DNA of 64,000 bases, taken from NCBI GenBank assembly GCA_004431415.1, contig QPMI01000396.1, positions 1 to 64,000 on the forward strand. Reading direction: 5' to 3'. Both the position numbers and the translations under genes were made by a program. The DNA is from Cyanophora paradoxa CCMP329 (taxonomy: Eukaryota; Plantae; Glaucophyta). A model generated the notes under the pieces. That model did no database searches, was not told the DNA's origin, and saw nothing but the letters and a program-made list of their open reading frames with translations. This document shows positions 26,696 through 61,714 of this stretch, piece by piece; position 1 is the stretch's first letter; the number at the start of each line of letters is the position of its first letter.

Positions 26696-26899
26696 ATATC
26701 GTAGGCCAGGCCTAGGTTCGTCCGGTTGCAAGCATCCGGTCATTTGCTACCGCTCACCCAGTTAGCTCTCATGTCGACAGCTAAGTTCGCGATACCTGGA
26801 TATGTTACAGTTCGCGTACGAGTGTGTGCATGTACTAGCTAAGGTATACATGCAGCCTACTCATGGTAACATGCCATTGGTTGACTGACGTGGATAGTA

Positions 26900-33439: not shown

Positions 33440-33615
33440 GGCTTACTATATTCTAGTCCATGTCCTAGCTAAAGATCTTCGCATCGCGGACTGAAAGCAA
33501 GATGTCGAATAAGACTCACTCCCAGGATTCGAACCTGGGTCTAAGCGATGTGAGCAGCCGTCCGGGACGGCTGGTCTAGATCTACGGGTACCGAATAGCA
33601 AAGCTTCAGCCCGAC
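33440..33615 (-). ncRNA. Third copy of the tRNA-like / Pol III repeat
   Basis: Nearly identical to 26272-26445, including ccaggattcgaacctgg and the cagccgtccgggacggctg hairpin. Confidence 0.5.
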
Positions 33616-33708
33616 CCTTCAACTAATAGCCAAGCTTCAGCCCTTTTTTGGAGCTTCGAATAGTGAGGAGGCGGCTGGTCACTTCCCCTTATCGAGCGCG
33701 CCATCCCG

Positions 33709-36700
33709 ATGTCCGACGAAGATGAATATCTGGCTTTGCGGCAGGTGAGTCGCACGTGTGCACTGCGTGACTCAAATGTGCAAGCAAAGCCAGAACTTCG
33801 GAACTTGTACTAATATGGCGTCCTCTACGCGCAGCGGCAGGCTAACGCGCTTGCACACTGGAACGCAGAGAAGAAGAACGAGGTTGAAGCGTTCCGACTC
33901 GCAGCTCAAGAGGTGCGCCTTATGCCGCGCAGTGCGAGGAGGGCCGCCGCTGCGCCGCGTAATTTGAGGCGTGGTTCGTAGATAGGCAGCGTCGTCGATC
34001 ATCACCCACCGGCTGCAATGTGGAAGACACAAGAACGCCGCCGGGGGAAGCAAAAGACGCAGGGGAGGAGGATCTTCTCTGGGCATAGCGGCGCCGCGAC
34101 CGCAGCGACAAGCGGGACATCTACAGCGCCCGTGGCCCGCCCAAGCGTGGCCATTGCGAGTAGTAGCGTAGCTGCTAGCGGCCGAACGCACATGTGCTCG
34201 GCTGCAGAAGTCACAACGGTCGGTGGGCATGCACACCTTCAACCACCCCACATCGTAAAAACGGACGAGTCGCCAGCGGCGGTCAAGCCCACCGACTCGA
34301 TGCTCGTGCCTCAGCTCGCCCGCGGCATCTGCATCGCCTGCGGCGAGGAGAGCCACCAGAACACAACGAGCCCTGCTCGCGCCATCGAGAACGGCTTCGT
34401 GGTAAGAAACCTCAAGTGATTACAATATATAGCTACACTATGAATCTGACACGTGGGCACAGGGGCATGTACTTGTCTGTATGATGGAAGGAGGAGAGCT
34501 TGGCGCGAAAATTCAGGAAGCGCGCAAGGAGGTCATCGATGCGATCGACATCTTCTTTCGCGGGACTTCAGCGGGTATTGCAGTGCAACTTGCTCAAGAG
34601 CTACGACTCGTGAGAGCCAGAATCGATAGATTCCCTGAAGAACATATATCTTCGTCAGAGCAAGCGACCGATTCACTACGTACCAGGATGACCCAGCCGC
34701 TGGAATTGAACGTGTGTACTCCTGCATTTATGTTTTCGTCCAGCACGCGTTGCGGTTGGGTGGCTGACTCAAGACACAGGAAGGGAACAGTGGCACCACT
34801 GAAGACGGGACTACGTCGGTCATTGCGCATGCCGTATGCAATGCAATCAGAGACGCGAAGTCAAACGTGGAGCGCGAACTGGGCTGGTTGCAATCGGTCT
34901 CAAGGTCGATCGGGAAGCTGGAGGGTCTTGCTTTCTACCTGGCGGATGAAGTTGTCACCCTGCGCAAACTTGCAGGGCAAGCAGGGGCGCCAGAGCAATC
35001 TGGTAATCTGCATCCCGCGCCAATAGAGCTGTCGCCTACTTCAGCCCTCCGGCTTTCAGCTACTACGGCACAGAATCTTCGCACCCTCCCTTCAGAACCA
35101 CAGGATCGCGGACCACCCGTGACCAACGTATTCTTATCGAACCTCTCTCCTTTTCGCCGGTTCTGCCGATCTCATCGTCAACCATTTCGCCTGCGGCAGC
35201 TCGCCGTCCACCACCTTACACTCCTCCTATGTGTACGTTTTCCGTGCACTCATAGTTCTTTCATTTAAAGTTACTAATCTCGTTCGTACAGAGCACGGGA
35301 TTCGGTGGTGGTTGTCCATGTCCAATATCACACCATACTCTCAAGCTAGCCCCTCCAAATACACAATAGGCGGCTGCTTACGATTACGACTGAATAAACT
35401 ATACGTAGACTTGGGTTTTCCGAGCTATATACGCAGGCTATCGTTGTGGTACGAAGGTACCAGTGTTGCCTACAGTACTGTGCACAAACAATCAGGAGGG
35501 CATTGGAAATCTCTTTTGTGCGAAGCGGCAGACCGTAGTGTGCACGATGCCGGATAGCGAAGAACGTGGTGAGGTCCCGGCGGAGTCTATCGTACCAGGC
35601 GTAAACTCTGCCGCATGTGTGACCGGCAGCAGCGTACACATGCACGTTCGTAAATTTGTACGAAAGGTGAACTGAGTCGATTGTCATTGGATCACGTCTG
35701 TGCACGTGCTGCGTTTCAATGAACATCGTATGCGCTGGTCCTTTCTACGTTTGCTTGCTCCTTTCTCTTATGTTCGGGGGGTACCCTGTATCGATTTGCT
35801 TTGGTGATATCGGCTCTTTGGGATCCGCTTCCCGCGCTGCTGGTGTTCATCATCTACGCAAAGCGTGCGTATGCAACCCGCCTACTGCCTGGGTTATGCT
35901 GCGCGGGTGCTGGCACACCTTTTAGCTGGGCTCTCGTCGACGTCGGAGCGGGGCTTGCATCTCTCACACTTCTTACGCAGCTCATTCTGACGGCAGGTAT
36001 TAGAGGGCAAGACAGTACGGACTGCCTGTACGACCTTCTGGCGTCAGTCCCGAAGCCACGTCATCCGGCTCGTTCTGTCTTGCAATGAACATCACGCGTA
36101 TGACACGTAAGTTTCTCCTTCGTGGTATTTCCGACGTTACGGGTTTGAAACCAGATCTCTGTCGTAGGTTCACGAATGCAGGATCTGGTGCAGCGGGTAA
36201 AATTTTCTTTTGACGTTGGTATTATTGCCGCGTCATTGCAAAAGGACAGGTGTTCGAGAACCCTGGGATTTTCATTATTATCGCATCTTTCATATGTGAC
36301 AACCAGTACCGTGCTGTCGTCTGTGTGCTTGGTGGCGTCTGTCAGAGTTGGAGACGTATAGTACGTGTGGTTGCCGTGATTGATGCGGTACTGATGGGCC
36401 CTCGAGCTCATTTCTCTTGTCCTTCAGGCACGCAATTTCAAACCAGTGTCAGCTGTTTTTTTCGTGCAGGATGAAAGTGGACTTGTGCGCAGACCCATCG
36501 GTCAAGTTAATATAAGCGTGAATTCAATTGCGGAGGTGCGTTGTATTTCGCTAATGAGATCGCCCATGATCACCTCGGTAGCTAATGACATGATTCAGGC
36601 CGTTCGTATGCTAATATCGCATCCTAAGAAGTGTCTTCTCGAACATGTGCGTTTTCAGGGTTACGACGCTATGTAACATATACCTCACGTCCTTCGATGG

Positions 36701-40938: not shown

Positions 40939-41256
40939 ATGAAGAAATTTGCGAACGTGCATGTGTACGCTGCTGCCGGTTACACATGCGGAAGAGTTTA
41001 CGCCTGGTACGAGAGACTCCGACGTGACCTCATCAAGTTCTTCGCTATGCGGCAGCTCACACACAACGGTCTGCCGCTTCTCACACAAGAGATTTACGAT
41101 GCCTTCAACGCTGCATTCGACGCCTCGGTGGCAGCAAGGGAATCGGACCCCGACAGAGTACGTCGCTACGTATACTATTCCTTCCGAATTCCTGCGACCC
41201 CCTGCTACTACAGTTCTTTCACTCCCCCCCAACCCCCAAGTAACTACAGCATGTGA
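40939..41256 (+). CDS. Hypothetical protein/exon with an inverted paralogous copy at ~35500-35665
   Basis: KFANVHVYAAAGYTCGRVYAWYERLRRDL versus minus-strand KFTNVHVYAAAGHTCGRVYAWYDRLRRDL; several differences are synonymous in this frame. Confidence 0.5.
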   Translation: MKKFANVHVYAAAGYTCGRVYAWYERLRRDLIKFFAMRQLTHNGLPLLTQEIYDAFNAAFDASVAARESDPDRVRRYVYYSFRIPATPCYYSSFTPPQPPSNYSM

Positions 41257-42355: not shown

Positions 42356-43725
42356 GAATCAAGTCCGGCAATTAGGGGTACAGCCTGCATTCCCGGCGCC
42401 GTGAACGACAGCCCGTGCGCTACACGCGCAACTCGTCGCATCGTTCTTAGCGCGCTCATTCGCCTGCGCAATCTCCAGCTAGGCCAACCCACCGCTAAGC
42501 GCGAAGCAACGCGGCGCGCTCCTTCGCCAACGCCAGCGCCATCAAGGCGAACACAAGCGCTAGAAGCGCCGCTCGTCGTACCTTCGAAGCGCGCTCAGTC
42601 GCAGGGTGGCTGATACCCCGGCTCGAAGTAAGCATGCTCAGACCCGATCCGCGCCTGCCGTCTAAACACAGACGACTTTTAACTTATATGTTTCAACAGG
42701 TTCCGATTACTTGATCATGGCGAAAACAAAAGCGTGCCATGGGATCTCACCTGGGATGTTCAGAGGAACGATGCAGAGGATCGAGCAGCCACATGATTAT
42801 AGAGGACCGATCCGTAACTATAGTCACTTCTCCGACGTCACTACTCTTATGAGAAACACACCGCATGTTGATCGCATCCAAATCGTTGAAGATGGAACGG
42901 TTCTGCAACGATTTCTGCAGATCGAGCCTATCCACATCTTCAGGCCATGGCAAGCCGGGCGTGACTTCGGTATTACCCTTACGTAAACCTCTACTTCTTC
43001 ACGTCTCACCACCAGACGCCTGCCAGCTATCTCTCGGGCACTCGATACGAAACTCCGCCTGCATCTGTCCTGTCCCTACACATCAGAACGTATCAGAGTG
43101 CCAGTTCAGTCAGTGTACTGCGTTCACCCGCACGTACGTGGTCGCATTCCCTTCATAAATTCCACATTATTCTTATCCCTGCGCAGTGTTTCGATTTCAA
43201 CGAGCACTTGATATTCTCCCTTCATAATGAAGATTGGTCAGCTATTCGTCCTGCACTCATGGTCATGATCAAAGTTAAATCCTTTCCATAGGGAATGCCC
43301 ATTCCAATTCTGCCAAAGACAAGCAGGTCTCCACAATCTCATCATTGACGAGTTCTTCAAGTCCATCCTTGACGGGGTCTGTGCCCGATTTACCTTTACA
43401 TCTCATAATTACTGATACCCTCATTCCAGACAACGCCTGCAGATCTCGCTGTCGAAATAGACAACACAGGAAGATGGCTGCCATGCGCTTCCGACAATAT
43501 ACCCGACTAGATCAAAATCTCCAAGCAAGGCTAGGCCGCGCACCCCCCATCAGTGCATCACCCCGCCCCGCCCTTCTCTGCCACATCCAACCCCGCCCCC
43601 GCCAGGGCGTCGCGAGTCGACCGCTGCGCCCCGGGCGGCTTACTATATTCTAGTCCATGTCCTAGCTAAAGAGCATCGTACCACGGACTGAAAGCAACGT
43701 GGCCCCCTAATCGATAGACCTATAG

Positions 43726-44624: not shown

Positions 44625-47059
44625 ATGGCACGTCAATCAAAGGCAGCTGCTGCTGCAGCCACGGCTGAGAAGAAGGACAACGTGCTCGAGCCGAAGAAGG
44701 CTGACGTGGCCGCGTCACTGGCGAAATCTGATGCCACTGCTGCTGCCGGGAAGGACCCGCTCCCTGTCGCCGTTGACGAGGCTTCGCCGGTGATCCCTAC
44801 GCCGGTGGATGCGACGTGGACGACGCGGCACGCGCTGCCTGGGTGCGCTTGGAGTTAATCAATGTTCGGTCCGGCATGGTGCGGATTTAAGCTGACGATC
44901 GGCGCGATAGCAGGCTGAACGACGGCATGCCACGGGAAGGGGCAGCTGCAACTATCACGGCGGCAGTGGCATCGTCTCGCCCGTTGCCTGGCGCGTCCGG
45001 ATCCATTTGCAATGCTGGGCAAGTGTACGTATTCTACGATCGCGTAATATTGGCTGTGACTAATACGACGTTATTCGTCCCTGCGTAGATCGGCTGCCGT
45101 GCCGGTCGCCACTAATTCGGCAAGTGCCACGGCTAATGGGATTGTGATGCTATCGTACGTGCTTTTATAATCAATAGCATTTGTGCACGACGAGCGTCAC
45201 AACCCTAATATATTTCCAGGCCCGCAAAGAAGGTTACTGTGGCGCGCACGTTCATGGATTTGAAGGATGGGAGGGATTTTAACGGTGTCGTGCGGATTGC
45301 GAACATGCACACCATAAGTGGAAGGAACGGAGGTGACACCATCCGCGGTACTCTGGAGGATGAGGTGCGCAACCCCGTTGTAGCTGGGTAACATCATGTG
45401 TAATGTCAATGTGGCGATTTTATATAAGCTTTCTGCTCATCGACGTACGCAATGCAGGTCGGCGATAAGGTGCCGCTCCGTATCTTCACAGGGGCGATGC
45501 TAACAAGTGCGGGAAAAAATGCCATCAAGGGAGACATGCTAATCGATCAAGTGAACAATATAACCGAACACTTGAACGCAAGCTGCAACTCAGAAAATAT
45601 GGTATACTCTCCCATTTACGTATACTTCCATTATCCGTATCAGTATGCTGACATGGAATATATCGATCAGTACTTAATCATGAAATCATCAAACAAAGCA
45701 CGCTACTTGGTGAAAGGGACTGCGACCGAGAAACTGGCTTGGCCATTGACGCGAGACCGCACACTGCTGAAGGAGATCCAGATTAATTCTGGTAATGTCG
45801 GTCTAATCAACTTCGAATCAGTGAATGAGGAGGTCTGTCACTCATGTTTTACCTATATTCATATCGCGCGTATTCATTACCTGCTCACTTTTGCTGCCGT
45901 ACGTTAGGATCCTCGTCTCATCGAGCTTCCTCACAAACTCGCGAATATGGATCGCGCATCATTTGTCATGATGCGCTACGACATCGTTTCCGACTTCAGG
46001 GGAGCAGCAGTTGACTATATGAATGTCAACAAACTGTGCGACTCGAACAGGTTCAGCGAATGTGCGTGCTACTATAGATAACTGGGATGATACCACGTTT
46101 TTCGTCGCGCTCGTACCGTGTTTTATCGCTTCATCAGATAACATTGGATGCATCATCAAGGAGGAAGAGGACGGATACGTGTGCATGGACAAGCTCGGGT
46201 GTAAGGTGCCAGCTCGGTTTGGACTTGGCGCAAAGTTCGAGTCCCTCGGGGAGCTGTTCGACACCTACAGCATCGACGGGGTCGCGGACATCGTCGTTTC
46301 ATTCGCGGAGGTTCGGACGTCTATACTGTAGTTAAACATGGTAAACGAATGCAAGGCGTAATTCACACGCATTCAAACGTAGTTCAAATTCGAGCGACCA
46401 TCAGGCACCCCGACGGAACTGTGGTTTGGCTTCTTTTCTGAAGTAATGGGACTTGCGGAATTCGAGGAGAAAAAGAAGACCCTGCCGGTAGGGTTCGTCT
46501 CGAAGGCAATTAAAATTCCGGATGCGAGTGCTCGCTTGCATGCATCTGTCCCGTTTGGTAATGGGTCGAACCGAGTTGGTGCGGAAGTTCAGCCTATCGG
46601 TTTTAACCTGTGTAACCCTTTCATGCAGCGCTCTTCGCCGGCGGTACCGGCCCGACAGGGAGCACCCCGAATTTGTCGGGTACGACCGGGATCCCTGTCA
46701 AGGTTGGAAATGGTGGATCAGCGATCGCTCTGAATGGAATCTCAAGCTCGCCGATGGCAATGGCAGCAATGAACATGCCGATGCAGCTGCGCCTGAGCCT
46801 GAAGGACAATCCGTTCGCGGTGTCTCGCGATCGCACTGGAAGTGAGGCTTCTTTTCCTAATGGGCTCGTTGAGCGCGAGGTATATGACTTTCCGTACATT
46901 GCATATGCCACGTTCCAGCTAATCTCGTAGCAGGCAACTATCGCAAAGCGGAAGAAGGGAGGCAAGGACGAAGCCAAAACTTCAAAGAAACAGAAGAACG
47001 TGAGCGTGGAGTCGGAGTCAGATGCGGAGGTGGACGACGAGGAGGAGGAAGAAAATTGA
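44625..47059 (+). CDS. Putative tandem OB-fold ssDNA-binding (RPA/SSB-like) protein, paralog B, multi-exon
   Basis: DLKDGRDFNGVVRIANMHTISGRNGGDTIRGTLEDEVGDKVPLRIF (OB-fold L.D..G motif); GCIIKEEEDGYVCMDKLGCKVPARFG; tail KRKKGG...EVDDEEEEEN*. Confidence 0.75.
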
Positions 47060-47540
47060 ACGGACCGACTCATGGCTCTGCATCTAATTCATAGATTCCA
47101 TATATTCATTCATAGTTTGAACATTTGTCATGTATAGCACAATGGCGGGAGGGTAGTAACCGGGTAGCATTATATATATATAGGTTTTCGTAGGTCATTT
47201 CGCTTCGCATACGAGATAAAGAGTGTAAATCAATTTCTTATAAAGTATCACGCAACGATGGCATACGAATCAACCGCACCGGGGCGCGGTTGGCTAGGTT
47301 GGGAAGCTGGGCGACCGCGGGCCGGGGCGCTGTAGCTCCGAGGGCGTGCTCCTGGTAGCGGACGCTAGATGGCAGGGCCAAAGCGCTGGAAGAGGGCCCG
47401 GAATGCGTCGGTAACATATTCTCACGTGCTGCATCCCTACGAAGCATGATGCACGCGACGTACACTGCGAGCACCCCTACGCTTGGTGCGCGCTTTCGAT
47501 TGCGTACCCGGCCAGTCCGTGCATCTGATCCGCGTCAACT

Positions 47541-48100
47541 ATGGCGCGTGTGAAGGTGACGCCGAAGAAATCCGATCAACGGATGGCCTCCAAGGCCGCC
47601 ACCGGGTCCCGCGGTCCGCGCAGGGCCAAGACGGGAACGAAGAGTGTCATTCCGGGAAGGAAACCTCACCGTTATCGTCCAGGTGCGAATGCTATCGCCC
47701 CATATCGTACCTCGCGGTGCGTGGATGATTACCACGTCAGCCCGAACCCGCAGGCACCGTCGCGCTTCGTGAAATCCGCAAATACCAGAAGACGACAGAT
47801 CTCCTCCTTCGCAAGCTGCCGTTCCAGCGGCTGGTGCGCGAGATCGCACAGAACTACGGCATGCCGGACAAGCGCTTCCAATCCTCCAGCGTCCTTGCGC
47901 TACAGGAAGCCAGCGAGGCGTACCTTATCGGCCTTTTCCAGGACGCAAATCTATGCGCTATCCACGCAAAGAGGTGCATTGCGACCTACTGATCATGAAT
48001 ACAACTACACTGCTTACATCTTACAGGCCCGACGCGCAGGGTGACGCTCATGCCAAAGGATATGCAACTCGCCCGTCGCATCCGAGGCGAGCGCACATAA
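47541..48100 (+). CDS. H3: Divergent histone H3 variant, 140 aa (introns 47683-47753 and 47974-48039)
   Basis: [100 protein letters not shown]; the spliced CDS is 423 nt. Confidence 0.97.
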
Positions 48101-48876
48101 ATCGTACGATTTCCAGGACGTGAGGTGTGCTCCGACAACTCCGGTGTAATCCAATTCAGGATACAGTATGTTTAACGCTTCACGAGATTATGTTGCACGT
48201 ACACTCAATGCAACGGATTGAAAACCGTAATAAAGCCCGTTGAGTAACGCGACGGACCAACCATCGGACGTGCACTAATTCAGCGGCACGTTATCGAATA
48301 CAGATGCACATGCTACTTGCATACTGCAGTGACTCGCTCATGTTGCACAGTCTTCCACTACTCTGGGTAATGCCTGGAGACGGGGGGCTGGTCCAGTTGG
48401 AAGCCAGCGCCGGGTTGCTTGCGGGGGGGGCATGGCCGGGAGCGACGGAGTACGGGGCACTACGGGGCGGCAAGGACGATGCGCTGCGGCGGGCCGGTGC
48501 ATGGGGGCGGATCGCGCGGGGCGGAGGGCGATGGGCTGCCTCCACATCTCTCGGCTGACGTGCGCAAGATTGTGCTCACCCCGGTCGCCATCGCCCTTGC
48601 ATGACCGACTCATCATATCGCTGACGGATGACGTTTGCCACGTTCTCGTCCGCGCTCCTGTAACGACATCGGAATCAAGATTTTATAGTATGGCGAAGTG
48701 TAGAGACGTGTTGACAAATTAAAGGGAGAGGGGGGCGACGGTACATGAGGAGGGGGGGGAGGGCGGTAGGGGGGGAGGGGGGTATGGAGCTTACCGCCGA
48801 ATGGCCTCCTCCGCGAGTACGGCCACCTGCATTGCAAGAGTCAGCCGTCATACTGAAAACGTCATTATCGGTAGTC

Positions 48877-51793
48877 CTATGCTTCGGTATGATTGAGTGT
48901 AAAAATCGTGTGGACCCTACAGTCGATCAAGTACAGAATCAAATCGAGCCGACCGGGGACGCCGATGCCGGCGCCTTTGCAAATCTCCACCAGCCGACCC
49001 CGAAACATCTTCATTGGATACAGCAGCAGCTCCGGCCCTGTCAATGGCAGCTCCTGCATGCACTGTAACCTGCTGCAGCGTTGGCTGAGAGTTCACGTAA
49101 GGGAAAATGGACGGACTCTGGAGATCCATCAGGGAGCGTGACAAATTGGCGAATATACGCGAGGACGGTGGGAGGCGTCCAGGTCATCACCGTCGCGGAG
49201 TCCGGGCCCACGGTACCCGGAGGTTGGGCTCCCATGTTCCCCGTGTTATCGTCGTCAACGCTGTCGCTCGCGGCATGTACCGGTGCGTTGGCATCTGACG
49301 TTGGATTACTAGGTGGTCAGAGACGACGTTCCAATAGAATATAACTTCGCTAGATCTAAAGTTGCTAGCTCAGGCACTGATAGCGCCTGCACGACCGCAC
49401 GTCCGTAATAGCGCACCTGCCTCCGGTCGTACTCTCTCGGTTCTCGCCCCTGCTCTCCGAATTAATCGGGTAGCCCGAATATTTAAACTCGATAGGTAAT
49501 AATTCGCACACCCTCTGATGAGACTTTAGCCTTCTTCGAATTCCGCGTGTTCGCACTTGGGCCCCCGTCCTTCTTTGCAGCAGAAGAGCTCTCCTCGATC
49601 ACACTACCCGCCGATTCGTACGCCTCCTCGTCCTCGTACGCGTCCTCCCCATCCGTCTCGCCCTCTACTCAAGGCGCCATGCGTCAGCGATTACTCACAT
49701 CGCATCGCTCGACATACCACTACTGGTTTCAGCGTTGTACTTGGGGCAGGTCTTCATGTGATTGGACAGGGTCTTCTTGCTGGCATACGTGCGATTGCAA
49801 TTAGCAGCGGGGCAAGGGAGACGGTCGTCGTCGGCCTTCTTGCTCGTAGCTTCGGAAGCTGCTGGATAAATTCAATGAGTACCGTTCGCACACCAGCCGG
49901 CGCACATGAGAGGCATGTTTGGCACCTGACTTCCGTTTGCATGCATCAATGTGCGTCCCCTTTCCTTTGAACGTTATGCCACAGTTATCACAAATAAACG
50001 GCGCCTGCTTCTTTCGCGCTTTCCCAGACGATCCTGCATCTCAGTCAGATCGGCTGCAGTTATGCATGATGTATGGGGAATGCAGTCAGCGATCGTGACC
50101 GTACCCCGTGACGCCTCGGTGCCCTTTCCTGCATCAGTCGACTCCGCCCCCTTCGAACCCTCGCGCTGGTTGCCTGCAATTGAGTCTAAGGGGTCGCTCC
50201 CTCGAGGGTGTTCGGGGACCTCTTAAATTCAACGCATCCTGCCGCTCACCAGGCCCTCCAGGTTGACTGTCTATACCTCGAGACTTGCCTGCGAGCATGT
50301 GAACTGTGACCATCTCGAGTGGATATTACGGTGCACCGGTTGCGTACCTTTCGATGTGGCGACGGGTGGTACGCCCGCCACCTCGCCTGCTTCCTTGCCC
50401 TTGCCAGTACCGCGCGATGACGCCATGCCTGCGGGCTCGAAGGACAATTAACTGCCGTATCCTTGCGACAGACGCTGCTCCCTTCGTTCGTGCACCTGAT
50501 GAACGAACCGTAGTCTGGGGGGGGCTTGATGCCCGCTCTTGTTTCACTTCGTCCGGGCGCCGCCACAGATTGGGCGGCGCAGGGACATTCGATCTCGTGG
50601 TTCTCGCCTGGGGGGGGCTTGATGCCCGTTCTTGTTTCACTTCGTCCGGGCGCCGCCGCATATTGGGCGGCGCAGGGACATTAGATCTTGTGGTTCGCAT
50701 TGCATCGGCGGGCTCGACTTTCGGCTGTACAGCGCGACCATCTTTGTACGCATCAGAACTACATATATCGCGCCAATTTCAAAGTTCCAATGACCGCACC
50801 TGTGCTGTGACGCCGCGGGCTCTTCTCTGATAGGCGCATCCCATCTGCGGCTCCAGCATTGCTGCCGCCTATTACGCCTGGCACCCCGCCCGAGCCTGCC
50901 GCAGAGCCGAACCGAGGTTGTCAGTCGCATCGTTCTAGCGGGGCTGCGCGCATGCACCTGCTATGTCGCCTTGGTCGCTCGAACCTGGTCCTGGGCCAAT
51001 CGTGACGTCACACCGCGAGCCATCGGAGGTCAGTTCCTTCACTCCGGCTGATCCACTATCGCTGCCGCCGGGTGTACATGCGCCCCCGTCCAAGCCTGCC
51101 GCCAACCCGAAGTTGTCAGTCGCTTCGTTCGAGAGGGGGTCCGGGCAGGCACCTGCGATGTCGCCTTCAGCCGGCGCGCTCGCAGTCTGACTGTCGCCTT
51201 CCGCGGGGTTATTTGCCGTCGCCGCCGCGCGCGCCGTCCCGCCCGTGTCCTTTGCACCTTCTGCCGAGTCCAGATCGATCACTGCTCGATTACAGTCAGC
51301 GTCAGGGCGCGGCGCTCGCTTAGTCTACGGTATCACCTGGAGCTCCGTCGCCTTCGGCATCGCCTGAAAGCGCCGGCGCCTCGCTCGTCGTCTTTCTCGA
51401 CTCCATTGTCTCGTCGGCCGAGTCCAGATCAATCACTGCTCCAGTCCGGTCAACGCCAGCACGCTGCGCTTCCGTGGCACTCTCACCTGATTGAGCCGCT
51501 AGCGCTCCTGCCGTACTGTTCCCTTCCATGTCCCTTTCGGCCGCGCCACCGCCCTCGTCGTCTTGTGCGAGCCTCTCGGTACGATCGTCGCCGGCGTGCG
51601 GCGAACCACACTCTCGCTCCATGTGCACCTAGTGCTGCGGCTGTCAGCTGGTTCCCTGTGGTGATGCTGTGCACGTGCACCCGACGCTCTGGTCTTCAGC
51701 TTCCTTACCTGCTCGCACCTGGCGTCTTACGCGCTTATTCCAACGTGTACCCCTTCGACCAGCCGTCCTGGACGGCTGCTCCCTTAGCTTCAT
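48877..51793 (-). CDS. Low-complexity multi-exon protein with two VIDLDS SIM-like motifs, two VKQE SUMOylation consensus sites and a C-terminal SAM-like domain; possibly damaged
   Basis: VIDLDSA at ~51430 and ~51275; 93-bp tandem repeat 50515-50700 (PDEVKQE); VMTWTPPTVLAYI...ELPLTGPELLLYP...GIGVPGRLDLILYLI is SAM-like. In-frame TAG at 50935; start uncertain. Confidence 0.45.
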
Positions 51794-53955
51794 TATAAGC
51801 TCATACTCGGAAGCCCGACGTCGACGGGCGGCGGCTGGGCTCCTGGTGCGACACGGGGATTGATCAGGCGGCTGAGGTCCGGATCGCTGGGCGCAGTTAC
51901 CGTAGTACGTATACGGGCGGAGACCCGCCAGACGCGTACGTATACGTACACCGGATCCTGAGTACTAGTGGATCGCCGCGCCGGCGCTGCGGCCGGCGCC
52001 GGGCCGCACCTCCGACCCGGGCCGGGCCGGCGGCGGGCCGCGCCCGGCCTGCGGCAATAAGCAAGGCATGAGGAGGACCTGCAAACCCTCCGAATTACCT
52101 GCAGCTGATCGATGTAACATAGCTAGCTACCAATATTAATAGTGCTCTAGATCTCGCCGGGCCTATAGCTAGGCATCCGGATCCGGATCCGGGCCGCGGC
52201 CGGTACTTTTTTTTGCAAAAGTGGACGTCGCATTGATACACCACGGCACATGTATCAATGTTCTACGTGACGTGCCCTTCCGACCGGTCAACTATCTAGC
52301 CGAAGGTGCTAGCTAGGTGCCGGCCATGGGTCGCGGGCCGCGGCCGGTACGAGGTCCCCCGGCAGCGGGCGCGCGAGGGTAGGAGGTGGAGCTCGAGCGG
52401 GCGCTAAATCTAGTACTAGTACTGATACTTGTTGCGCGTTCATGCAAACAATCCGAATTACCTGCAGCTGATCGATGCAGCACAGCTATATAGCTAGCTA
52501 CCAATATTAATAGCGCTCTTCACGATATTAATTCTGATGATATATACGAAATATTTCAAAATTACGGGCGCCGGCTACTATAGGTATTAAATATTTGAAT
52601 TCTGCGTGAAAATTATATATGTTGTCCGGATATCGATCTATCCTTCTGGCATTTTAAACATTTCCGTGCCGGCGGAGACCTGATACAGACCAGAGGCTGC
52701 ACTGCCCCGGGGCAGGAATGTTTATTGAGCAAGAAAGTTCACCCCTGCTCGAGTCTCGATCGGCTGAAAAAACTCGCAGGAGCCTGTTTTCCCGGCGTCC
52801 GGTACAACAGGTACTTGAGGCGGCCTAGCGGACCACCCTGTGCCCCTCCGGTCTCGGCATGTTTGACATGAATTGTCGGGCGTATCGGGCGCATTTAGGC
52901 GCACTCGGTCCGGCAGATATACCGCCACTTGGTGAGGCGCTAGATTGCATTTTTCGAAAATGTGTTCTTGTCTATTCAATGATTCCTGGTCCACCGGATA
53001 GGACTCGGATCTTCCTGTACACGTTTCCGGACTCCTAGGGACATGCATATGCCTTGCTAGGATCCGGCGAGAAAACCCGGGTTTTGAGAGGTCGGGACAT
53101 TTCATTTTGGCCTAGGGTGGGCACCCGAACACCCCCAAGTGGGGGAAGGGGAAGGGGTCCTTCCCCAAATAAGTGCCGCCGGAGATTTGTGATTGCTTTA
53201 ATTTGTTGTCCTTAATATCACTACCTACGCCGTGCACGTGACGGGGGGTTCGCCACACCGTACTAGTAGTCTCTCAAAAAAGACAAAAAAAGAGATTTCA
53301 TGTTTTACAGTAGCCGAAGTACTAGTCTGACGGTACCAAATCCTTTTTTCTAACCAAGCTCATTGATATTCATTTGCATTAACTTATATAATTAGATGCA
53401 AATTTAATCATGAGAATCAATTATCGATCGAGCTAGTTAAATCGATCGGTTTAATCGATCGGTTTAATTGACGTACGATTAATTTAATTCGGTACGTGCG
53501 AATTCGAAGTTCTACGAACGTATATATATATATATATATATAAACGTGCGAAAAAGAGTTTATTTTATAATTATAATGGCCGCCGTATTAGGCTACTAGT
53601 AGCCGGCCCTGCAGCCGGCGCCTGCAAGCTGCGCTGCAGGCTGCAGCTGGTACCGCACGCCGCGGCCTGTATCACTTGCTCGAGGACCCGGGCGTTGAAT
53701 CGGGCGCCATGGTCCTTGCACGTTGCAACCCTCCCTGCAAGGAGCCGTTACGTTTTTGTCCCCCACCCCCTAGTACTGGGCTCAGTGGGCTACTAGCCTA
53801 GTAGGGCCGCTAGGGTGATTGAAAATTTTCAATCACCCTAGCTGCAGCTTTAAAGCTGCAGCGCTCACGCCAGCGCGCATCATTCCGAAGTTCGCACCAG
53901 CAGCGCCCTTGGCCTTCTCTCCGTCGTCACTCGTTCTCCTCAGTAACCAAGCAAC

Positions 53956-55630
53956 ATGGGCAACGCTGTGGTAAGCCTGTGCCCTCTGAGCGCGCGCGCG
54001 CATGCGCGTTTCCATCGTCTCGGAGGCCACCGTCGTTGACGCTGCCGCCCTCGCGATCTGCGCAGGACAAGTGCCAGGACGTCAAGAAGCACGCCGACTA
54101 CCAGGCTGCCGATGGCAAGGATGCGTGCGTGCAGATGGATAGGTGTAACGGCCGGACTCTTCAAAGTCTCTGAAGACGCGCGTGCTCCTGCGCAGGGCCC
54201 AGGCGAAGGGTGTCATCGAGGCGGCGCTGAAGGAGAACTTCGACTTCCAGGTGCGCCAGCGCTCCAGACGCGAGCTCGGGGACCAGTCGAGAAACGCTCC
54301 GGGATCCGACGTCGACCGATCATGATGCGGACGTTGCGCGCAGGGCCACCCGAGCGACTTCCGCGCCATCGACGCGGACGGCAACAACACCCTCACCGCG
54401 GCGGAGCTGCAGAGCTTCTTCGACGCCCAGGGCATCACCGGCTCTGTCAAGGACCTGGTCCGCGTGCCCGACGCCTTGATCTAGATCCCCTGTCATCCAT
54501 GCGCGTTCGCGTGTTAATGCTTGCGATTGCCCTGCATGCGCAGATCGCCGTGTACGATGGTCCGCCGGCCCCCGCCGCATGCCTACGCGCTAACGTAGCA
54601 CCTCCCTCATGATCATTATCGTGATCTCACGCGCGTGCGGCGCCGGCCCCCAGCGACCAAGGCTCGCTCCGACAACAAGTTCGCGAACGGTGACGGCGAC
54701 GGCAAGCTCAGCATCAACGAGTGCGCGTTGCCCCCCGGGACTCAGTACTCCTAAATCAAATCGGCCCCCATCCTCCTCCTAATTATATAACGGCGGGGCG
54801 CAGGTGGGTCAACTGCGGCGGCCACAAGAACGCGGACGAGGCGCAGGATGCGGCGGCGGCGTCCGAGGTCGCCTGCCCCTGCGAGATCCCCAAGTGCCCC
54901 AGCGTGCGCCTCGCGCTCACTGCCCCGACCCCGCGACGTCGACCCGCGCACGCCCCGCTGACGGCGCTGCAACGAAACCCGAACCCGACCGCGCAGGTCG
55001 ACCTCAGCCCGCTGCAGCAGCAGATCACGGAGGCGACGGCCAGCATCCTCGCGGCCATCGAGTCGACCAACGCTGCGATTAGCACCGCCCAGACCACCAT
55101 CCAGGTCCTAAATTATAATTACTTCTGATTCTCTTTTGATTTCGAATTCGAATTCCCGTCGTGACCCGCGATCGGCTGCAGGGCGACATCGCCAACATCG
55201 CCGGTGACATCGTCGACCTTGAGACGAACATCGACGGCAAGATCGCCGAATCCGAGGCGGACGTGATTGCCGCCGTCAAGGACGTGCGCATGCACCCGCC
55301 TCGGCGAACGATTGATAAGCACATACGCTTGTGCTCACCGCGCTCTCCTCGCGGGCGGGCAGATCGAGTCGCTCGACATCGTCTCCTCGTTCACCCGCAA
55401 CCCGAACGTCACCTGCTCGGCCCGCGCCGAGGAGCCGGGGCAGGAGGCCGTGGTGCGCGCGCGCGTCGCCGGCTGCAGCTGCGCGGCAGCGGCGCCGGCC
55501 TCGCTGACGCGGGCGCCGCGGGCAGGTCGCCAACGATTTCGAGGACGACTTCGACACCTACGAGGCGGACGAGCTCGAGCTCGTCGCCGAGGCCGCCGCC
55601 GCCGAGTGCGCCGAGGCCATCGACGCCTAA
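53956..55630 (+). CDS. Host-type EF-hand Ca-binding protein with N-myristoylation-like start and coiled-coil/acidic C-terminus (10 exons)
   Basis: Splicing at gt...(c)ag gives MGNAVDKC...FRAIDADGNNTLTAAELQSFF...NGDGDGKLSINEW...VDLSPLQQQITEA...ECAEAIDA*. Very high GC3. Confidence 0.8.
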
Positions 55631-56889
55631 GCGCGAGCTAGCCGCTGGCAGCTGCAGCCGGCAGTTTTCAAGGGGATCGCCCCCCTCATCTGCATGCAAT
55701 GTAATCAATGTCAAGTGCATACCACGATGACTGAGCAATTAATTTACATTTACCATGTTCAATTGCGAATTGAGGAGGATAGCTTTAGGGTCGGGGCATG
55801 GAGCTGCAGCTGCAGGGGGGGGCGGGGGGGTATGGGCTGCGACCTCAGGCCGGGAGCCTCTCGTCTCATGATTACGAGCGCCTCTCCGATTGTCGCAGCG
55901 CCTCTCCGATTGCAAGCACCCTACCTTGGAGCTTGCAATTGGATGCTCAGCTATAGTAGACGTCGGACGGTTGCTCGACCTTGCGATTGCATGCGCATCT
56001 CCCTAAACATTCCAGTAGTAATAAGTCAAACTCGCAGCTCGAGCTCAAATTGCGATTACAAGTTGCAATTGTACATGTGACGTCCTGCTTCGCCTCCGCC
56101 TCCACGTCGTCTTGTTGTTCCTCTTACTTGTCTGCTTCCTGTTATTTATCTTTCTCAATTTTGTCCTCCGCTTCTTAGTGATGTAATTCCTTCCGATATT
56201 GATGGTATTTCTAGCTCTGGCTCTTCTTCGTGTCAGTCATCCTCTGTCCCTAGATCTGCTCGATTTATCGTCTATTCTCGAAGTCGATCTGTCTCGAGCT
56301 CTCAGTCTGTGTCTTTTCTTTTTTATTGTCGATTTTGGCTCTTTTTGGATCTCTCGATCGACCCTGGACTCTCCGCCTGCCACTGTCTGCGGGGTACCTC
56401 CGCCACCGTGTTCGGCGCCGGCTGTCAGTACTTTGCTCGGTAGCTCCCCCGTCGTGGCTCCTCGGGGGCCTCTTCGTCGTCGTCGTTCGCTGGGTTCCGG
56501 CTCCGGGTCAGATTTCTCGCCGGGCTTACCTTCTAGATCTCCTGGCTCTGCTCCTGGGCCCTCAGCTCCGGGACCGGCTTCCCCGATCTCCTCCCGGACT
56601 CGTGGTCGTACCCGTCGCCTGTTGTATACGCATGGACCTCACACCCGGGCAATTCCGCTTCGCTCCATAGCCCCCGATTCCATGCGTTTCAAGTGTATAC
56701 CTCCAGCGTTTCATTAGTTATTTCACCATATACGTCTACCCCACCGATCCAGCTACGTCTACTATCCGATTCCCTAGGTCGAAGCCTAGCAATATCTGAC
56801 GACTATACAAGGCAGAGGAGACAACAAGAATAGGCGAAGAGGAGCGCTGCCCCCATGAGCGCGGTCTGCAGAGCAACGTGGCAGAATAG

Positions 56890-57146
56890 TCTAGACGATA
56901 TTAATGTGTACAATGAAGCTATCAGAGGAAACACGTTTAGGTTAATTTTAGGCGATAATGAAGTGTACATCGAAGCTAACAGAGGAAGCACGTTTAGGTT
57001 AATTTTAGGCGATATAGATGAGTACGATGAAGCTAACAGAGGAAGCACGTTTAGGTTAATTTTAGGCGAAATGATGAGAACATTGAAGCAACCAGAGGAA
57101 AAGCGTTTAGCTCTATCTAGGCGATAATGATGAGTACATTGAAGCA
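56890..57146. repeat. ~57-bp tandem repeat, ~4.5 copies
   Basis: gaagctaacagaggaagcacgtttaggttaattttaggcga core at ~57-bp spacing; the last copies are degenerate. Confidence 0.92.
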
Positions 57147-57185
57147 CTTCGTGTCCCAAGAGCGCTCTGGTGCGGCCTCATCCAC

Positions 57186-57518
57186 TTAATCTGGCTGCTT
57201 TTCCGAAACTGGAGTCTTCTCCTTTCTGAAACTTGATAGCAAGGACTTTCTTCTTTTCATTGGCTTCGGGATATCTGGGGGTGGCCACGACAATCTTCGG
57301 CCTTCATCAAGCCAAGGTACAGGTGAATCAGTTCGAGTAAATGGAGAATTGGACCTAGAAGTCCTGGGTGTGTTAATAGGCGATACCTGAGTTTCTGGGG
57401 TGCGAGAGCCCTCAGTGTCCGATATTTCGAGATTAATGGTCGTCTCACAGCAACTACAATTCAATTTGCTGGTGACGTTGAGATGGAACATATCCATACA
57501 TTTTCGAAGCAAATCCAT
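57186..57518 (-). CDS. Small viral hypothetical protein (CSCC, S/TP-rich, basic C-terminus)
   Basis: 110-aa ORF co-oriented with the cluster, preceded by an AT-rich spacer. Confidence 0.65.
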   Translation of the reverse strand: MDLLRKCMDMFHLNVTSKLNCSCCETTINLEISDTEGSRTPETQVSPINTPRTSRSNSPFTRTDSPVPWLDEGRRLSWPPPDIPKPMKRRKSLLSSFRKEKTPVSEKQPD

Positions 57519-57556
57519 CTATTAATGGAAAAATATAAAAAAACAAAGGAATGCGG

Positions 57557-58387
57557 CTATGGAGCCGTATCGCTGCCGAATATAGGAAAATACCTGTTTG
57601 TACCAACATATTCTGCATATGTGTTCTGTTTAGCAATAGCATCGGTTCTTTCAGCATAAAGGATGCATTTGTAGATACCAAACCTGGTTGCTCTCACCAA
57701 GAACTGGTAGTCTTCAAGGCCGAAATTTACACCATGATAAGCGATCCCGAAATTATCATAAGGAGTTATTACCACCGTAATATTGGGTGTCCCACCTTCA
57801 ACCTGGCAGAGAGCGTAGATATCAGGCGGGATGTCAACGACGACCTTATAATGATCACCAATTTCAACCAGAGAATCAACTACTGATGTTTGCTCATTAA
57901 CAACAATGGGGAAAATCTTGATAATATATGGTGCATTCATGCTGGGAACGTAGGTGCGAATACGCGTTAAATTATCAATCGGGTTTGGTTGATCGTTCAC
58001 AAAGAGAGGTGCTCCGATAGCTCCACCAACACGAAGACCATCACCAATATATGCGCCGCCATTTCGACAGTTAATAGCTCCAGAACGAGATTCAAAAGAA
58101 TAAGTCGAAATAGGATCGCCGTAGCTGTCTGGATCTCCATAATGTGAGCTGAAATTTGCATTCGTAACTAGCAGCTTTGTAGTTTTGACCACGCCATTAT
58201 TTTTATCGCATCTGAGTTCCTGCAATCTCAGTTTATGGGTGGACCCAAAGGTGTTCATCGTAGGCTGAACTTCTGTTGATTCAAGACCTTCTACATCATC
58301 AAAAGTAGCATGCTGCAGAACGTGATTTGCTGGTGCAGATAGTGAGAGCTGTGCCGTAACAATACGCTCTATTGGAATTTCAGCCAT
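57557..58387 (-). CDS. Putative virion fiber/spike protein, paralog 1
   Basis: Shared N-terminal domain H..QH..D...G.ESTE...ELRCDKNNGVVKTTKLLVTNAN and GGAYIGDG. Confidence 0.8.
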   Translation of the reverse strand: MAEIPIERIVTAQLSLSAPANHVLQHATFDDVEGLESTEVQPTMNTFGSTHKLRLQELRCDKNNGVVKTTKLLVTNANFSSHYGDPDSYGDPISTYSFESRSGAINCRNGGAYIGDGLRVGGAIGAPLFVNDQPNPIDNLTRIRTYVPSMNAPYIIKIFPIVVNEQTSVVDSLVEIGDHYKVVVDIPPDIYALCQVEGGTPNITVVITPYDNFGIAYHGVNFGLEDYQFLVRATRFGIYKCILYAERTDAIAKQNTYAEYVGTNRYFPIFGSDTAP

Positions 58388-58410
58388 TTTACATTTAAGT
58401 AATATATAAT

Positions 58411-59265
58411 TTAAGGTGTTGGATCGTCAATAACATCTGGCTCCTGGTAAAATCCGGTTGTAAAGATATCAGCAATATTCACACCACGAAGTGCCGAAAC
58501 AGCTGCTATATCTGTTCTCAGTCCCATAATCATAGTATTGTAAACTCCTACCTCAGTGACAAACAAATCATAAGTAAATGTCAAATTGTTATATACACAA
58601 TATCCCCGACCGAAATGATTTGATGCTTGAACAAAGAATAGGTAATTGTGACCTGGTTGATTGTTGTTTGCTCTGCACATCGAAAGCATTGCTGTGGGAA
58701 GAGGAATATTCCTTCTCACACGATCAGTTCCTGTAATGGAAACCAACTCTGAATTTTCAAGAGAGACAGATGATGCAACATAGAAGTGAAGAAAAGGTTG
58801 CTGTGCAACAGGTGTATAGAACCGAATTCGTTGTGGATTTTCAACATTTTGTTCAAGGGTATCCGGGACATCATTGTATGCAATCGAAGAAGAGAGTTGA
58901 CCGGACACACGACAACCACCACCAATAAATGCTCCACCTGAACGAATTGTAGCAGCAGCAGAATTCTTGTCGAAATCGAGGGCTTTCAGATCAACACTGT
59001 ATGCATCAGGACCTCCATTTATTGGTTGGAAGAAGTTAGCATTGCTTACGAGTAGTCGAGTTGTTTTAACCACACCTGAGTTCTTGTCAGCTCGAAGTTC
59101 TTTAACTCGAATCATCGAATTTTTGTCAAAAGAGTTACCATTCGAATTAGGTCTTTCTGTGGATTCTAGACCGCGAACCTCATCATTAACTTCATGCTGG
59201 CGAAAATGCATTGCAGGTGATCCAAGGGAATAGATAGGTAGCTGAACCCGATTATATTCGCCCAT
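58411..59265 (-). CDS. Putative virion fiber/spike protein, paralog 2 (likely start MGEYN at 59265)
   Basis: ELRADKNSGVVKTTRLLVSNAN; GGAFIGGG; C-terminal region similar in layout to paralog 1. Confidence 0.8.
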   Translation of the reverse strand: MGEYNRVQLPIYSLGSPAMHFRQHEVNDEVRGLESTERPNSNGNSFDKNSMIRVKELRADKNSGVVKTTRLLVSNANFFQPINGGPDAYSVDLKALDFDKNSAAATIRSGGAFIGGGCRVSGQLSSSIAYNDVPDTLEQNVENPQRIRFYTPVAQQPFLHFYVASSVSLENSELVSITGTDRVRRNIPLPTAMLSMCRANNNQPGHNYLFFVQASNHFGRGYCVYNNLTFTYDLFVTEVGVYNTMIMGLRTDIAAVSALRGVNIADIFTTGFYQEPDVIDDPTP

Positions 59266-59303
59266 TGCTTGTTTTACTAAGAAGGAAAGAAAAATAATGT
59301 TCA

Positions 59304-59567
59304 CTACTCTTCTGTGACATTGTTATACTCAATGCCTTTCTTTACAGTTCCCCTTTGGAATGCCTGTGACACAATTGCTTCCTTTGAGGTTGGTATTTGA
59401 ACTCCTGCCGAAATGCAAGATTGAATTTCTTTCTGAACAATCTCATCAATTGCAATTCTTGCCCTGTTGTGAACCACATTATCAATCCAATCCTGAACAG
59501 AAGCAGCACAGTATTCCATTCCCAACTTCTCAATATCAGATAGAACGACTTGGTATATATTTGACAT
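59304..59567 (-). CDS. Small phage-type tail-fiber-associated protein
   Basis: LSDIEKLGMEYCAASVQDWIDNVVHNRARIAIDEIV...QAFQRGTVK resembles small proteins I recall next to C1q-tipped fibers in marine phages (recalled, not searched). Confidence 0.65.
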   Translation of the reverse strand: MSNIYQVVLSDIEKLGMEYCAASVQDWIDNVVHNRARIAIDEIVQKEIQSCISAGVQIPTSKEAIVSQAFQRGTVKKGIEYNNVTEE

Positions 59568-59588
59568 CTCTACTTAATAGAGAGAAAA

Positions 59589-60608
59589 TTATGTGATACT
59601 TAGAAGTTCACCTGTGAAAAGTGTTCTACTTGAATAACTACCTGTGGAACCTGTGACAAGTGTTACATACTCACCAGCAGGAACATTGATAATTGCACTG
59701 AGAGTAAGAGGTTTGGTTGTGATAGTGGAATTAGCTTCTACTGAAATGTTAACTCCATTGGGTAAAAGATTATTTTTCAGAAAACTAAGACTTATTGCAG
59801 CACTTGTTGTTGAATTGGTATATGCTGTAAATCTATAATCACCTGCAACAGGAGCTGTAAACCTTCCATTAGTAACATCGAATGACCCTGTATTATTTAT
59901 CAAAACGGTTGTCCAATTGATCAGAGCGGCTGCACTTGTAGCAACATGAGTATATCCAAGTTGAACAGAAAATCGTGGCTGAGAAACATATTTTAAATAG
60001 CTTGAATTCAGAGTCAAACGATTGGCTTCCAGTGTTGCAAAAAGATCACTGTTACGTTTTAACAGCAGATTAACATCTGCTCCTGTATCTATTTCAGGAG
60101 TGACCACCTTGGTTGATGCTGTTATTATTGATTCTGTGGAATTGGGAATACTAATTCCAGCATTTGCTGTTACCAATCCTGTAAATGTGCTTGTTCCTGT
60201 TATGCTTACTTGATTGGCTGTAAGGGTTCCATCAATCCTTGCCCCATCTCCAATATAAGCGCCTCCACTTCTTACTACAAGAGCTGAGTTATTGATGGTG
60301 TTGTCAAAGGTAACAATCTTTGGTGTGGTGAACCCTCCCACATCATCATAAATTGCTGAATCTGATACAATCTGACCTGATTGAACTTGGTTCTTGTTTG
60401 AGACTATTAGACCTGTGGTTCTCACCTTGCCTGCATTTCGATCACATCGAATTTCTTTGCATCTGATCACAGAATGTTGAGAGAATGAATCGGCTCCTGT
60501 GGTCTCTGTGCAAATGAAACCTGGGGTAGCATCTGTTACTGTATGGTTGAGTTGATGCAATTTCGGCGCTGCATAACAGAAAACAGGAACAGCTATTTGT
60601 GTAGACAT
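59589..60608 (-). CDS. Fiber protein with C-terminal C1q/TNF-like domain, paralog 3
   Basis: Shared N-terminal domain; PRFSV...NNTGSFDVTNGRFTAPVAGDYRF...FTGELL. Confidence 0.85.
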   Translation of the reverse strand: MSTQIAVPVFCYAAPKLHQLNHTVTDATPGFICTETTGADSFSQHSVIRCKEIRCDRNAGKVRTTGLIVSNKNQVQSGQIVSDSAIYDDVGGFTTPKIVTFDNTINNSALVVRSGGAYIGDGARIDGTLTANQVSITGTSTFTGLVTANAGISIPNSTESIITASTKVVTPEIDTGADVNLLLKRNSDLFATLEANRLTLNSSYLKYVSQPRFSVQLGYTHVATSAAALINWTTVLINNTGSFDVTNGRFTAPVAGDYRFTAYTNSTTSAAISLSFLKNNLLPNGVNISVEANSTITTKPLTLSAIINVPAGEYVTLVTGSTGSYSSRTLFTGELLSIT

Positions 60609-60630
60609 TCTTTATATTATACAAACAAAA

Positions 60631-61695
60631 TTATATAGCACTTACCAGGTAAACCAACAAGATGTGATTGCTTGGAAAGTCAATACTACCTAACATACAG
60701 TAAATTTGAAGACTGTCTCCCATGGTGAGGGTAATAAGAGCTTCGTAGCACATCTGATTCCTGCTTGATTGACTTGCATATGAAAGAATCTGATTTGTAT
60801 TGTTTCCGTTTATTCTTAGTCCAATCTGGGTCAAGGAGGCAGTTGCAGTATTGTCTTCCGTAATTGTAAAATAGACCCTATAAACTCCTGAAACAGGGGC
60901 TGTAAATGTTGCTGGATACAGTTTGTCAAAATGACCCTCATTATTCACAAGATATGTTCCAACTGGAAAAGGAAGTGTTGGGGTGCCGGAACTAACACTT
61001 GTTCCAAAAATCTGAGCGTTTGCTTGTTGTCCTGAAATACACATTCTTGGGCAATAGCTGCGTTTAAGACCACTGTTTGTTGGAAATGTGATTGCTTTCA
61101 GATCTGTTATTGTCTTTTCGAGAGTGAAAATGATATCTCCGTTTCGTTTATAATTCACATTTGCATCTGTCCCATTATCCATCTCAGGTGCATTAACTCT
61201 TGTAGTAGCTATTCGAGTAACATAGTTAACATCTCCTGAGAGACCACCATTAAAGGTCATCAAACCTGTGAATGAACTTGTCCCATTCACATTCAATTGA
61301 TTTGCTGTAACAGTTCCTGCTACATTTGTCCCATCTCCAATGTAGGCACCACCACTCTTCACCACAAGAGCAGAAGTATTGCTTGTGTTACCAAAAGTAA
61401 TTATCTGTGCTGTGGTGAATCCACCCACATTATTATACACTGCTGAATCGGGAACTACTTGTCCTGCTTGAACTTGATTTTTATTCGAGATAATAATTCC
61501 TGTGGTTCTTATCTTGCCTCCATTTCGATCACATCGAATCTCTTTGACTCTGAGTATATTATTCTCTGTGAAAGACGTATTGCTTGAAGCTTCAGTGCAT
61601 ATATTCCCGGGTGTAGAGTCGACTACTTCATGAGAGGTGCTGTGTAGTGATTTCGCGGCAAGTTCATAGTTTGGGATTTCTAAAAGGGAGGTCAT
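60631..61695 (-). CDS. Fiber protein with C-terminal C1q-like domain, paralog 4 (likely start MTSLL at 61695)
   Basis: N-terminal half closely similar to paralog 3; NNEGHFD...TFTAPVSGVYRVYF. Confidence 0.85.
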   Translation of the reverse strand: MTSLLEIPNYELAAKSLHSTSHEVVDSTPGNICTEASSNTSFTENNILRVKEIRCDRNGGKIRTTGIIISNKNQVQAGQVVPDSAVYNNVGGFTTAQIITFGNTSNTSALVVKSGGAYIGDGTNVAGTVTANQLNVNGTSSFTGLMTFNGGLSGDVNYVTRIATTRVNAPEMDNGTDANVNYKRNGDIIFTLEKTITDLKAITFPTNSGLKRSYCPRMCISGQQANAQIFGTSVSSGTPTLPFPVGTYLVNNEGHFDKLYPATFTAPVSGVYRVYFTITEDNTATASLTQIGLRINGNNTNQILSYASQSSRNQMCYEALITLTMGDSLQIYCMLGSIDFPSNHILLVYLVSAI

Positions 61696-61714
61696 CTTTA
61701 TAATTACGAAATAG

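Follow-up and report, generated by a model that had tools for sequence, protein, structure and literature searches.

The region analysed here (the window) comprises 64,000 nucleotides of Cyanophora paradoxa CCMP329, in which approximately 1.3 to 51.5 kb form an island with few of the palindromic 6-bp scars of the host: their density is 1.4 per kb at 34-51 kb against ~15 per kb beyond 51.2-51.8 kb. On the forward strand of this island lies a gene for a histone H3 variant, with three exons (47541-47682, 47754-47973 and 48040-48100) that translate into an open product of 140 amino acids. Exon 1 encodes a rewritten tail up to the entry of alpha-N, exon 2 covers alpha-N, alpha-1, loop 1 and alpha-2 (Pfam Histone, E 2.6e-27), and exon 3 contains loop 2, alpha-3 and the stop. 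Both introns (71 nt at 47683-47753 and 66 nt at 47974-48039) are of the GT-AG type, and a polyA-signal-like hexamer is found 3' of the gene at 48229. The 140-aa model shows no differences from EukProt protein P0003, and exon 2 is 100% identical to three C. paradoxa proteins in EukProt (P0002-P0004, with tig..._g... names). GC3 of the gene is 0.71, against 0.50-0.56 for island genes and 0.88 for a host-like gene. For spliced genes the searches took each exon separately; later H3 searches used P0003.

Both introns are precisely absent from RNA-type contigs of two studies (X15 and X17 for intron 1), which cover the locus from 47307 to 48656 on the forward strand and share their 3' part with the transcript of a convergent gene. 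The DNA contigs, from two other studies, retain both introns and contain no joined form. The RNA status of the runs is a guess of the tool, and the contigs inform on splicing rather than on expression level or source copy. Given the precise removal of the introns, the H3 variant is very likely transcribed; the first-pass annotation had listed a gene that is never expressed among the outcomes that would count against it, and the splicing speaks against this.

Two neighbouring genes in the amplified block (see below) are likewise spliced in RNA contigs. Upstream lies an orphan gene (44625-47059, forward strand), which by eye only resembles RPA70 and OB folds. Its identity as an RPA was rejected, as Pfam, PDB profiles and a structural model with a pLDDT of 37 gave no confirmation; no Pfam or PDB match was obtained for it, and a lipocalin-like match in the Atlas is a lead. 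A diverged paralogue with about 70% amino acid identity is located at 28607-30981 on the reverse strand, and between the two dN/dS amounts to 0.08, which indicates purifying selection. Downstream, the convergent gene (48600-51715, reverse strand) is a multi-exon C2H2 zinc-finger gene (C2H2, E 2.8e-6), the joints of which appear as CT..AC in the RNA contigs.

The first-pass annotation would likewise have been undermined by a single-copy host gene, and had proposed to look for other copies. These were found: P0003 represents three identical full-length gene models, and P0002 and P0004 are two further models with the same fold and altered N-terminal models (probably due to indel errors). Altogether at least five near-identical gene models are present at five places with ids far apart, some of which may come from small redundant contigs. 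Contig depth was mapped over 46300-52290 only and, as the tool warns, is not the same as copy number. In run X11 a single DNA contig of 5374 nt spans 46300-51532 at a depth of 623 and differs by a single substitution and a single inserted base; depth is 617 as far as 52234 and then 218 across 52231-52290, and a 3.1-kb contig of another locus, used as flank comparison, has a depth of ~110. This suggests that a 6-kb block around H3 has been collapsed from five to six near-identical copies (~5-6 times the flank). In run X5 depth falls earlier (116, then 41 at 51823-52182), presumably through GC dropout over a stretch of 85% GC. At 51503-51641 a diverged second allele (seven substitutions and a 6-bp insertion) is present with roughly a third of the main depth, which points to a related element subfamily.

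A candidate Helentron/HLE2 3' terminus is located at 52207-52279 on the forward strand, consisting of a T-run, a palindromic subTIR (52211-52221), a stem-loop (52231-52260) and a final TT (52278-52279). In published 3' ends of Helentrons and HINEs the subTIR lies 38-60 nt and the stem-loop 8-35 nt from the end, with a T-rich target (PMC4067079), and the spacing observed here agrees with these rules. The motif belongs to a very high-copy family: many other loci match over this stretch only, and one match ends at 52280. Because the high-copy motif starts here, the depth drops and the spacing fits that of Helentron/HINE 3' ends, 52207-52279 seems to mark where the amplified unit ends on the right. 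No 5' subTIR partner was found within the 64-kb window (its position may be to the left of base 1), nor were close relatives of the terminal motifs found in viral contigs. Host genes for acetohydroxyacid synthase (tig00020516) and a fibrocystin-like protein (tig00020876) occur within ten genes of two of the copies (supplements of PMC6704402); neighbours thus differ between copies, which favours dispersed insertion.

A spliced RepHel gene of Helentron type (15527-23810, ends approximate, forward strand) encodes a zinc finger, a Rep domain (Helitron_like_N, E 1e-17) and a PIF1 helicase (E 3e-17), followed by an end that appears OTU-like by eye. Rep motif 2 carries both Helentron signatures (the F-x-R triad and S). 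An AP-like endonuclease domain after the helicase was not matched in the segments screened at 21714-23616. At 23500-23810 OTU-like motifs are seen after the helicase, with Val at the site of the catalytic Cys and without Pfam support. RepHel lies 24 kb upstream of H3, and RepHel, H3 and the terminus at 52207-52279 are all co-oriented. RepHel is probably the mobiliser of the H3 block, a link that we can only infer because no 5' end was found. The earlier description of the H3 gene as transposon-encoded could not be read from the window alone, with RepHel 24 kb away, but the multiple copies, the mobile-element island and the Helentron-type terminus argue for it.

Between RepHel and the H3 block several repeats occur. 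Just 3' of RepHel lies an intronless deoxynucleoside kinase gene (24630-25355, forward strand; Pfam dNK, E 1.6e-12); another Cyanophora model (P0300, tig00000492_g1432) fuses the beginning of a related deoxynucleoside kinase to a peptidase S74 domain. Following 122-bp repeats, two to three copies of a module of 205-211 bp are found at 26258-26710 (forward strand), with a 19-nt palindrome and a stretch resembling a tRNA B-box; those at 26.4 and 26.6 kb are possibly an inner 3' end or a promoter motif. The same palindrome module at 33426-33649 (forward strand; palindrome at 33555-33573, then a T-run) lies between RepHel and H3 and is possibly an inner 3' end. Tandem repeats of 122 bp followed by the 205-211 bp module, with a minus-strand stretch resembling tRNA A and B boxes, were seen at 25875-26710, 32350-33650 and 43623-43703 and are candidates for a SINE-like sequence, a terminus or a promoter motif; no tRNA or Rfam family matched the repeat modules. 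An inverted copy of the palindrome at 51757-51781 (reverse strand) lies 45 nt upstream of the start of the zinc-finger transcript and is not the block end in run X11. An 18-kb unit bounded by the palindromes was considered as the amplified element and rejected, since in X11 full depth continues across the right palindrome and the left one lies within a longer repeated module. A 162-nt inverted repeat (35496-35657 and 40945-41106, 88%) overlaps short open frames.

The left part of the island contains a relic of H3 exon 3 (7042-7114, forward strand) with its splice acceptor kept and neither exon 1 nor exon 2 nearby; its synonymous sites are saturated at a dN of ~0.1 (14 codons only). Together with a 136-nt stretch at 6597-6732, which is 89% identical to 48403-48538, it appears as the remains of a related H3 locus. 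At 2426-3156 a spliced gene resembling Ulp1/C48 proteases was recognised from motifs around His-Trp-Ile-Leu (single exons have no Pfam match), and at 8843-9913 SUMO/ubiquitin-like coding segments were recognised mainly by eye (Rad60-SLD, E 0.12). The first 1250 nucleotides consist of a GC-rich 473-bp tandem repeat with 30-bp hairpins. To the right of the island, scar-rich DNA carries a GC-rich multi-exon gene of host type with an EF-hand (53957-55630), after which low-GC, CpG-depleted (o/e ~0.45) intronless paralogues that match C1q, phage-tail repeats and H-lectin, as well as 57-bp repeats, occupy 56800-64000. This virus-like end is separate from the H3 block. The simplest model for the island is a composite element that grew by read-through to successive 3' ends.

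The residues of the H3 variant were compared with 184 other H3s, and here most of the first-pass reading stands: the fold is intact, K4, K9 and S10 are kept by position, K36 is replaced by R, loop 1 is one residue longer, K79 is absent, E105Q and T107A are present, and Q68 and F84 are retained. Over alpha-N and the fold, 79 of 94 positions (84%) agree with the H3 consensus. Besides the changes in loop 1 and at positions 79, 105 and 107, the rare fold changes comprise L82K, V101I and I119L, and A88S is a further difference. C110, H113, R116, T118, K122 and D123 are the same as in canonical H3, and because of this we infer that the variant can pair with H4; alpha-N and the C-terminus are canonical as well. 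The predicted monomer structure was poor (pLDDT 54) and a fold search with it uninformative.

The tail, in contrast to the fold, has been rewritten and is three residues longer, with R2, K4, K9 and S10 at unchanged positions. T3 has become V, A7-R8 has become P-K and K14 has become M. K9 is present in a changed context (T6-P7-K8-K9 against T-A-R-K). For K27 the reported loss of context needs an amendment: the A-R-K-S motif is indeed gone, but a lysine had been overlooked, as the best counterpart of K27 is K29 in R-R-A-K-T, where the preceding arginine is missing. Overall the canonical H3/H3.3 tail set (ARTK, two ARKS motifs, K36 and K79) is not found in this protein, and no close relative of its tail was found in metagenome or viral contigs.

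A second variant from Cyanophora (P0005, 133 aa, represented by four identical models) has in common with P0003 the loop insertion, L82K, A88S, E105Q, T107A, G34P and V35G. In the fold the two are 88% identical, and their tails have diverged: common to both are R2-V3-K4, P7, K9-S10 and the loss of the K27 motif. P0005 keeps K36, so that K36R is not common to both variants. In a tree without the longest branches they form a clade with an SH-aLRT of 93. Besides these two, the only protein among 350 H3s with both Q105 and A107 is L083, encoded at 3876-4295 of a giant-virus contig at 1.3 kb from a major capsid gene, with a canonical tail. L083 groups with P0003 and P0005 in three trees at moderate support (94/94, 81 and 88). 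As it forms a long branch (68% identity in the fold), the putative viral link of the variant lineage is a lead only.

SUV39/G9a-type and PRC2 enzymes require an R-K context, and readers of K4 require A1, R2 and K4. The first-pass annotation had proposed resistance to PRC2-type silencing. In C. paradoxa, core PRC2 genes were not detected and evidence for H3K27me3 was inconclusive (PMC5405695), which makes escape from PRC2 a weak reading. Repeats and viral genes of this alga carry CpG methylation and are silent, and the same study finds 5mC together with methylated H3K9 and H3K27 in two other protists (PMC12344493). Algal DNMT3s are without PWWP and ADD domains, so a direct link between K36 and DNMT3 is not available. 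The loss of the K9 context may be more important than that of K27.

Our preferred reading, to which we hold tentatively, is that a large and recently amplified Helentron/HLE2-type element carries the H3 gene as functional cargo, and that the gene supplies a K9-context-defective and K4-competent H3 which helps the genes of the element to stay active; among functional readings this is the most economical. This reading builds on what was observed, namely an intact and spliced gene in multiple copies, a sister subfamily, a Helentron-type RepHel in the island and a terminus-like right end. RepHel would move the H3 block as part of a large rolling-circle element, and the gene would be translated into a replacement H3 that retains the fold facing H4, DNA and chaperones as well as the R2-x-K4 activation site. 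Contexts for silencing writers and readers would be lost, that is, R8 before K9, A-R-K-S at K27, K14 and K79, plus K36 in the P0003 subfamily. The variant would enter nucleosomes on the element or act in trans, and its chromatin might then be a poor substrate for heterochromatin and the accompanying CpG silencing, such that the element genes stay transcribed. In favour of the functional-cargo reading, the two neighbours of H3 are expressed although repeats in C. paradoxa are generally methylated and silent. Against it, RepHel is 24 kb away, at least two terminus-like modules separate it from H3, and the window holds no 5' subTIR partner. In its boldest form, which we consider doubtful, giant Cyanophora Helentrons would encode their own H3 variant, kept through subfamily diversification and loaded on element DNA where it refuses silencing marks, with a gene lineage possibly shared with giant viruses.

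The intermediate GC3 of the H3 gene, another point against functional cargo, fits as well with a captured passenger. Here a divergent H3 of the host or an element would have been picked up by rolling-circle read-through and then amplified without benefit to the element, with expression driven by its own promoter. Helentrons are known to capture histone fragments (in Culex; PMC4067079), the near-identical copies are too young for selection to show, and the scar-rich host-type DNA at 51.8-52.2 kb within the amplified block is what read-through capture predicts. The Culex captures are broken, however, whereas the Cyanophora H3 is intact and spliced, and the second diverged variant P0005 is also intact and multi-copy, with a conserved fold and a rewritten tail. 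On balance we regard an idle passenger as unlikely, though worth keeping in mind.

It might also be argued that the block is another mobile unit beside the Helentron (a non-autonomous element of 18 kb, a tyrosine-recombinase/primase element without a capsid, or the remnant of a giant virus), whose H3 packages an episome or remodels host chromatin as single viral H3s would. The inverted palindromes at 33555 and 51760 lie 18.2 kb apart, virus-like fibre genes are found at 57.5-64 kb, endogenous giant viruses have been reported in C. paradoxa, and the capsid-linked L083 sides with both variants in residues and trees. Nonetheless, the amplified block extends past the 51760 palindrome in X11, L083 has the long branch and limited fold identity given above, and the segments screened over 33.6-52 kb yielded no match to a recombinase, primase, TFIIB, capsid or NCLDV/mirusvirus hallmark (short exons may be missed). 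Such a unit therefore seems quite unlikely to us.

An improbable origin is an H3 variant that the host domesticated for a role of its own, for example in stage-specific chromatin, and that multiplied through segmental or subtelomeric duplication: duplicated sequence accounts for ~35 Mb of the assembly (PMC6704402) and two copies lie near contig starts, but depth drops just past the terminus-like motif, the copies have different neighbours, and the island around the H3 gene is rich in orphans and poor in scars.

The suggestion of a CenH3, or of centromere hijacking by the element, finds the least room. CenH3 folds are ~50-60% identical to canonical H3, and that of the variant is 84% identical. 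Among the published CenH3 criteria (PMC4359364), the variant shows the highly divergent N-terminal tail and the replacement of T107 (by A), its loop 1 is only marginally extended (by one residue), and it keeps Q68 and F84; nor is it low-copy, with at least five gene models and a depth of ~5-6 times the flank. Both the longer loop 1 and the T107 change are also seen elsewhere: loop 1 is equally long in four H3s with canonical tails (P0006, P0017, P0034 and P0058), and 19 of 56 H3s from viral contigs (not dereplicated) have A, S or C at position 107. Among PDB entries, the 60 best matches all belong to the H3.1, H3.2 or H3.3 type, and the trees contained H3-type rows only and no named CenH3. The capsid-linked L083 has all three diagnostic changes (Q68, F84 and T107 replaced), which makes these residues unspecific. 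Taken together with the loss of T3 and a canonical alpha-N and C-terminus, the residues, fold identity and copy number led us to reject CenH3 identity, and a mimic made by the element to seed a kinetochore on itself, to which the divergent tail, longer loop 1 and T107A might point, is highly improbable.

Compared with CENP-A and other CenH3s, the H3 variant is thus similar in its divergent tail and replaced T107 and, marginally, in its slightly longer loop 1, and different in Q68, F84, fold identity, canonical alpha-N and C-terminus and its five or more copies. Annotation can be misled by such 'diagnostic' residues, since H3s of mobile elements acquire them too. Closer are the single H3s of viruses (DSLPV1, Manila clam xenomavirus, sylvanvirus and NCLDV MAGs), with a fold identity of 73-87% to host H3, which are presumed to enter host nucleosomes (PMC9145170). 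They resemble the Cyanophora variant as lone H3s with a variable tail and a near-canonical alpha-2 chaperone site (S-S-V-L in Cyanophora). The viral genes are intronless, however, whereas the Cyanophora gene is spliced, nuclear and multi-copy, lies in a capsid-less rolling-circle island and has a rewritten tail of normal length. Bracovirus CvBV-H4 is likewise a histone of mobile DNA with a conserved fold and an altered tail, and a tested precedent for nucleosome incorporation with regulatory effect (PMC9145170); it differs in being an H4 with an extended tail that acts on another organism, while the target in Cyanophora would be the element's own host genome.

Among transposons, Helentron-Cq-32A of Culex quinquefasciatus (PMC4067079) is a Helentron with histone sequence in eight copies. 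Its histone pieces contain stops and frameshifts, in contrast to the complete, spliced gene with an intact sister subfamily found here, and its authors knew of no other histone capture. Accessory genes of HLE2 and Helentron elements (RPA, OTU, proto-Helentron SET and 2OG-Fe(II); PMC11417382, PMC4067079) are comparable as chromatin and replication cargo with the same Rep motif 2 signature; the word 'histone' is absent from the main text of the HELIANO survey of 404 genomes. The transposon-chromatin fusions cited from 10.1101/2021.11.30.470311 comprise readers and enzymes and no free-standing H3 gene. Our literature search, of which the scope leaves aside Iyer et al. 2014 on KDZ cargo, brought up no case in which a transposon carries a core-histone variant that is intact and expressed. 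Summarizing, transposons with chromatin readers, SET domains or TET-like enzymes and viruses with single histones are known. If the functional-cargo reading is true, the Cyanophora element would defend itself by supplying the nucleosome rather than an enzyme or reader. Incorporation of the variant would then be a new way of countering silencing, and would serve as a natural experiment to show which contexts in the H3 tail heterochromatin depends on in an alga seemingly without PRC2.
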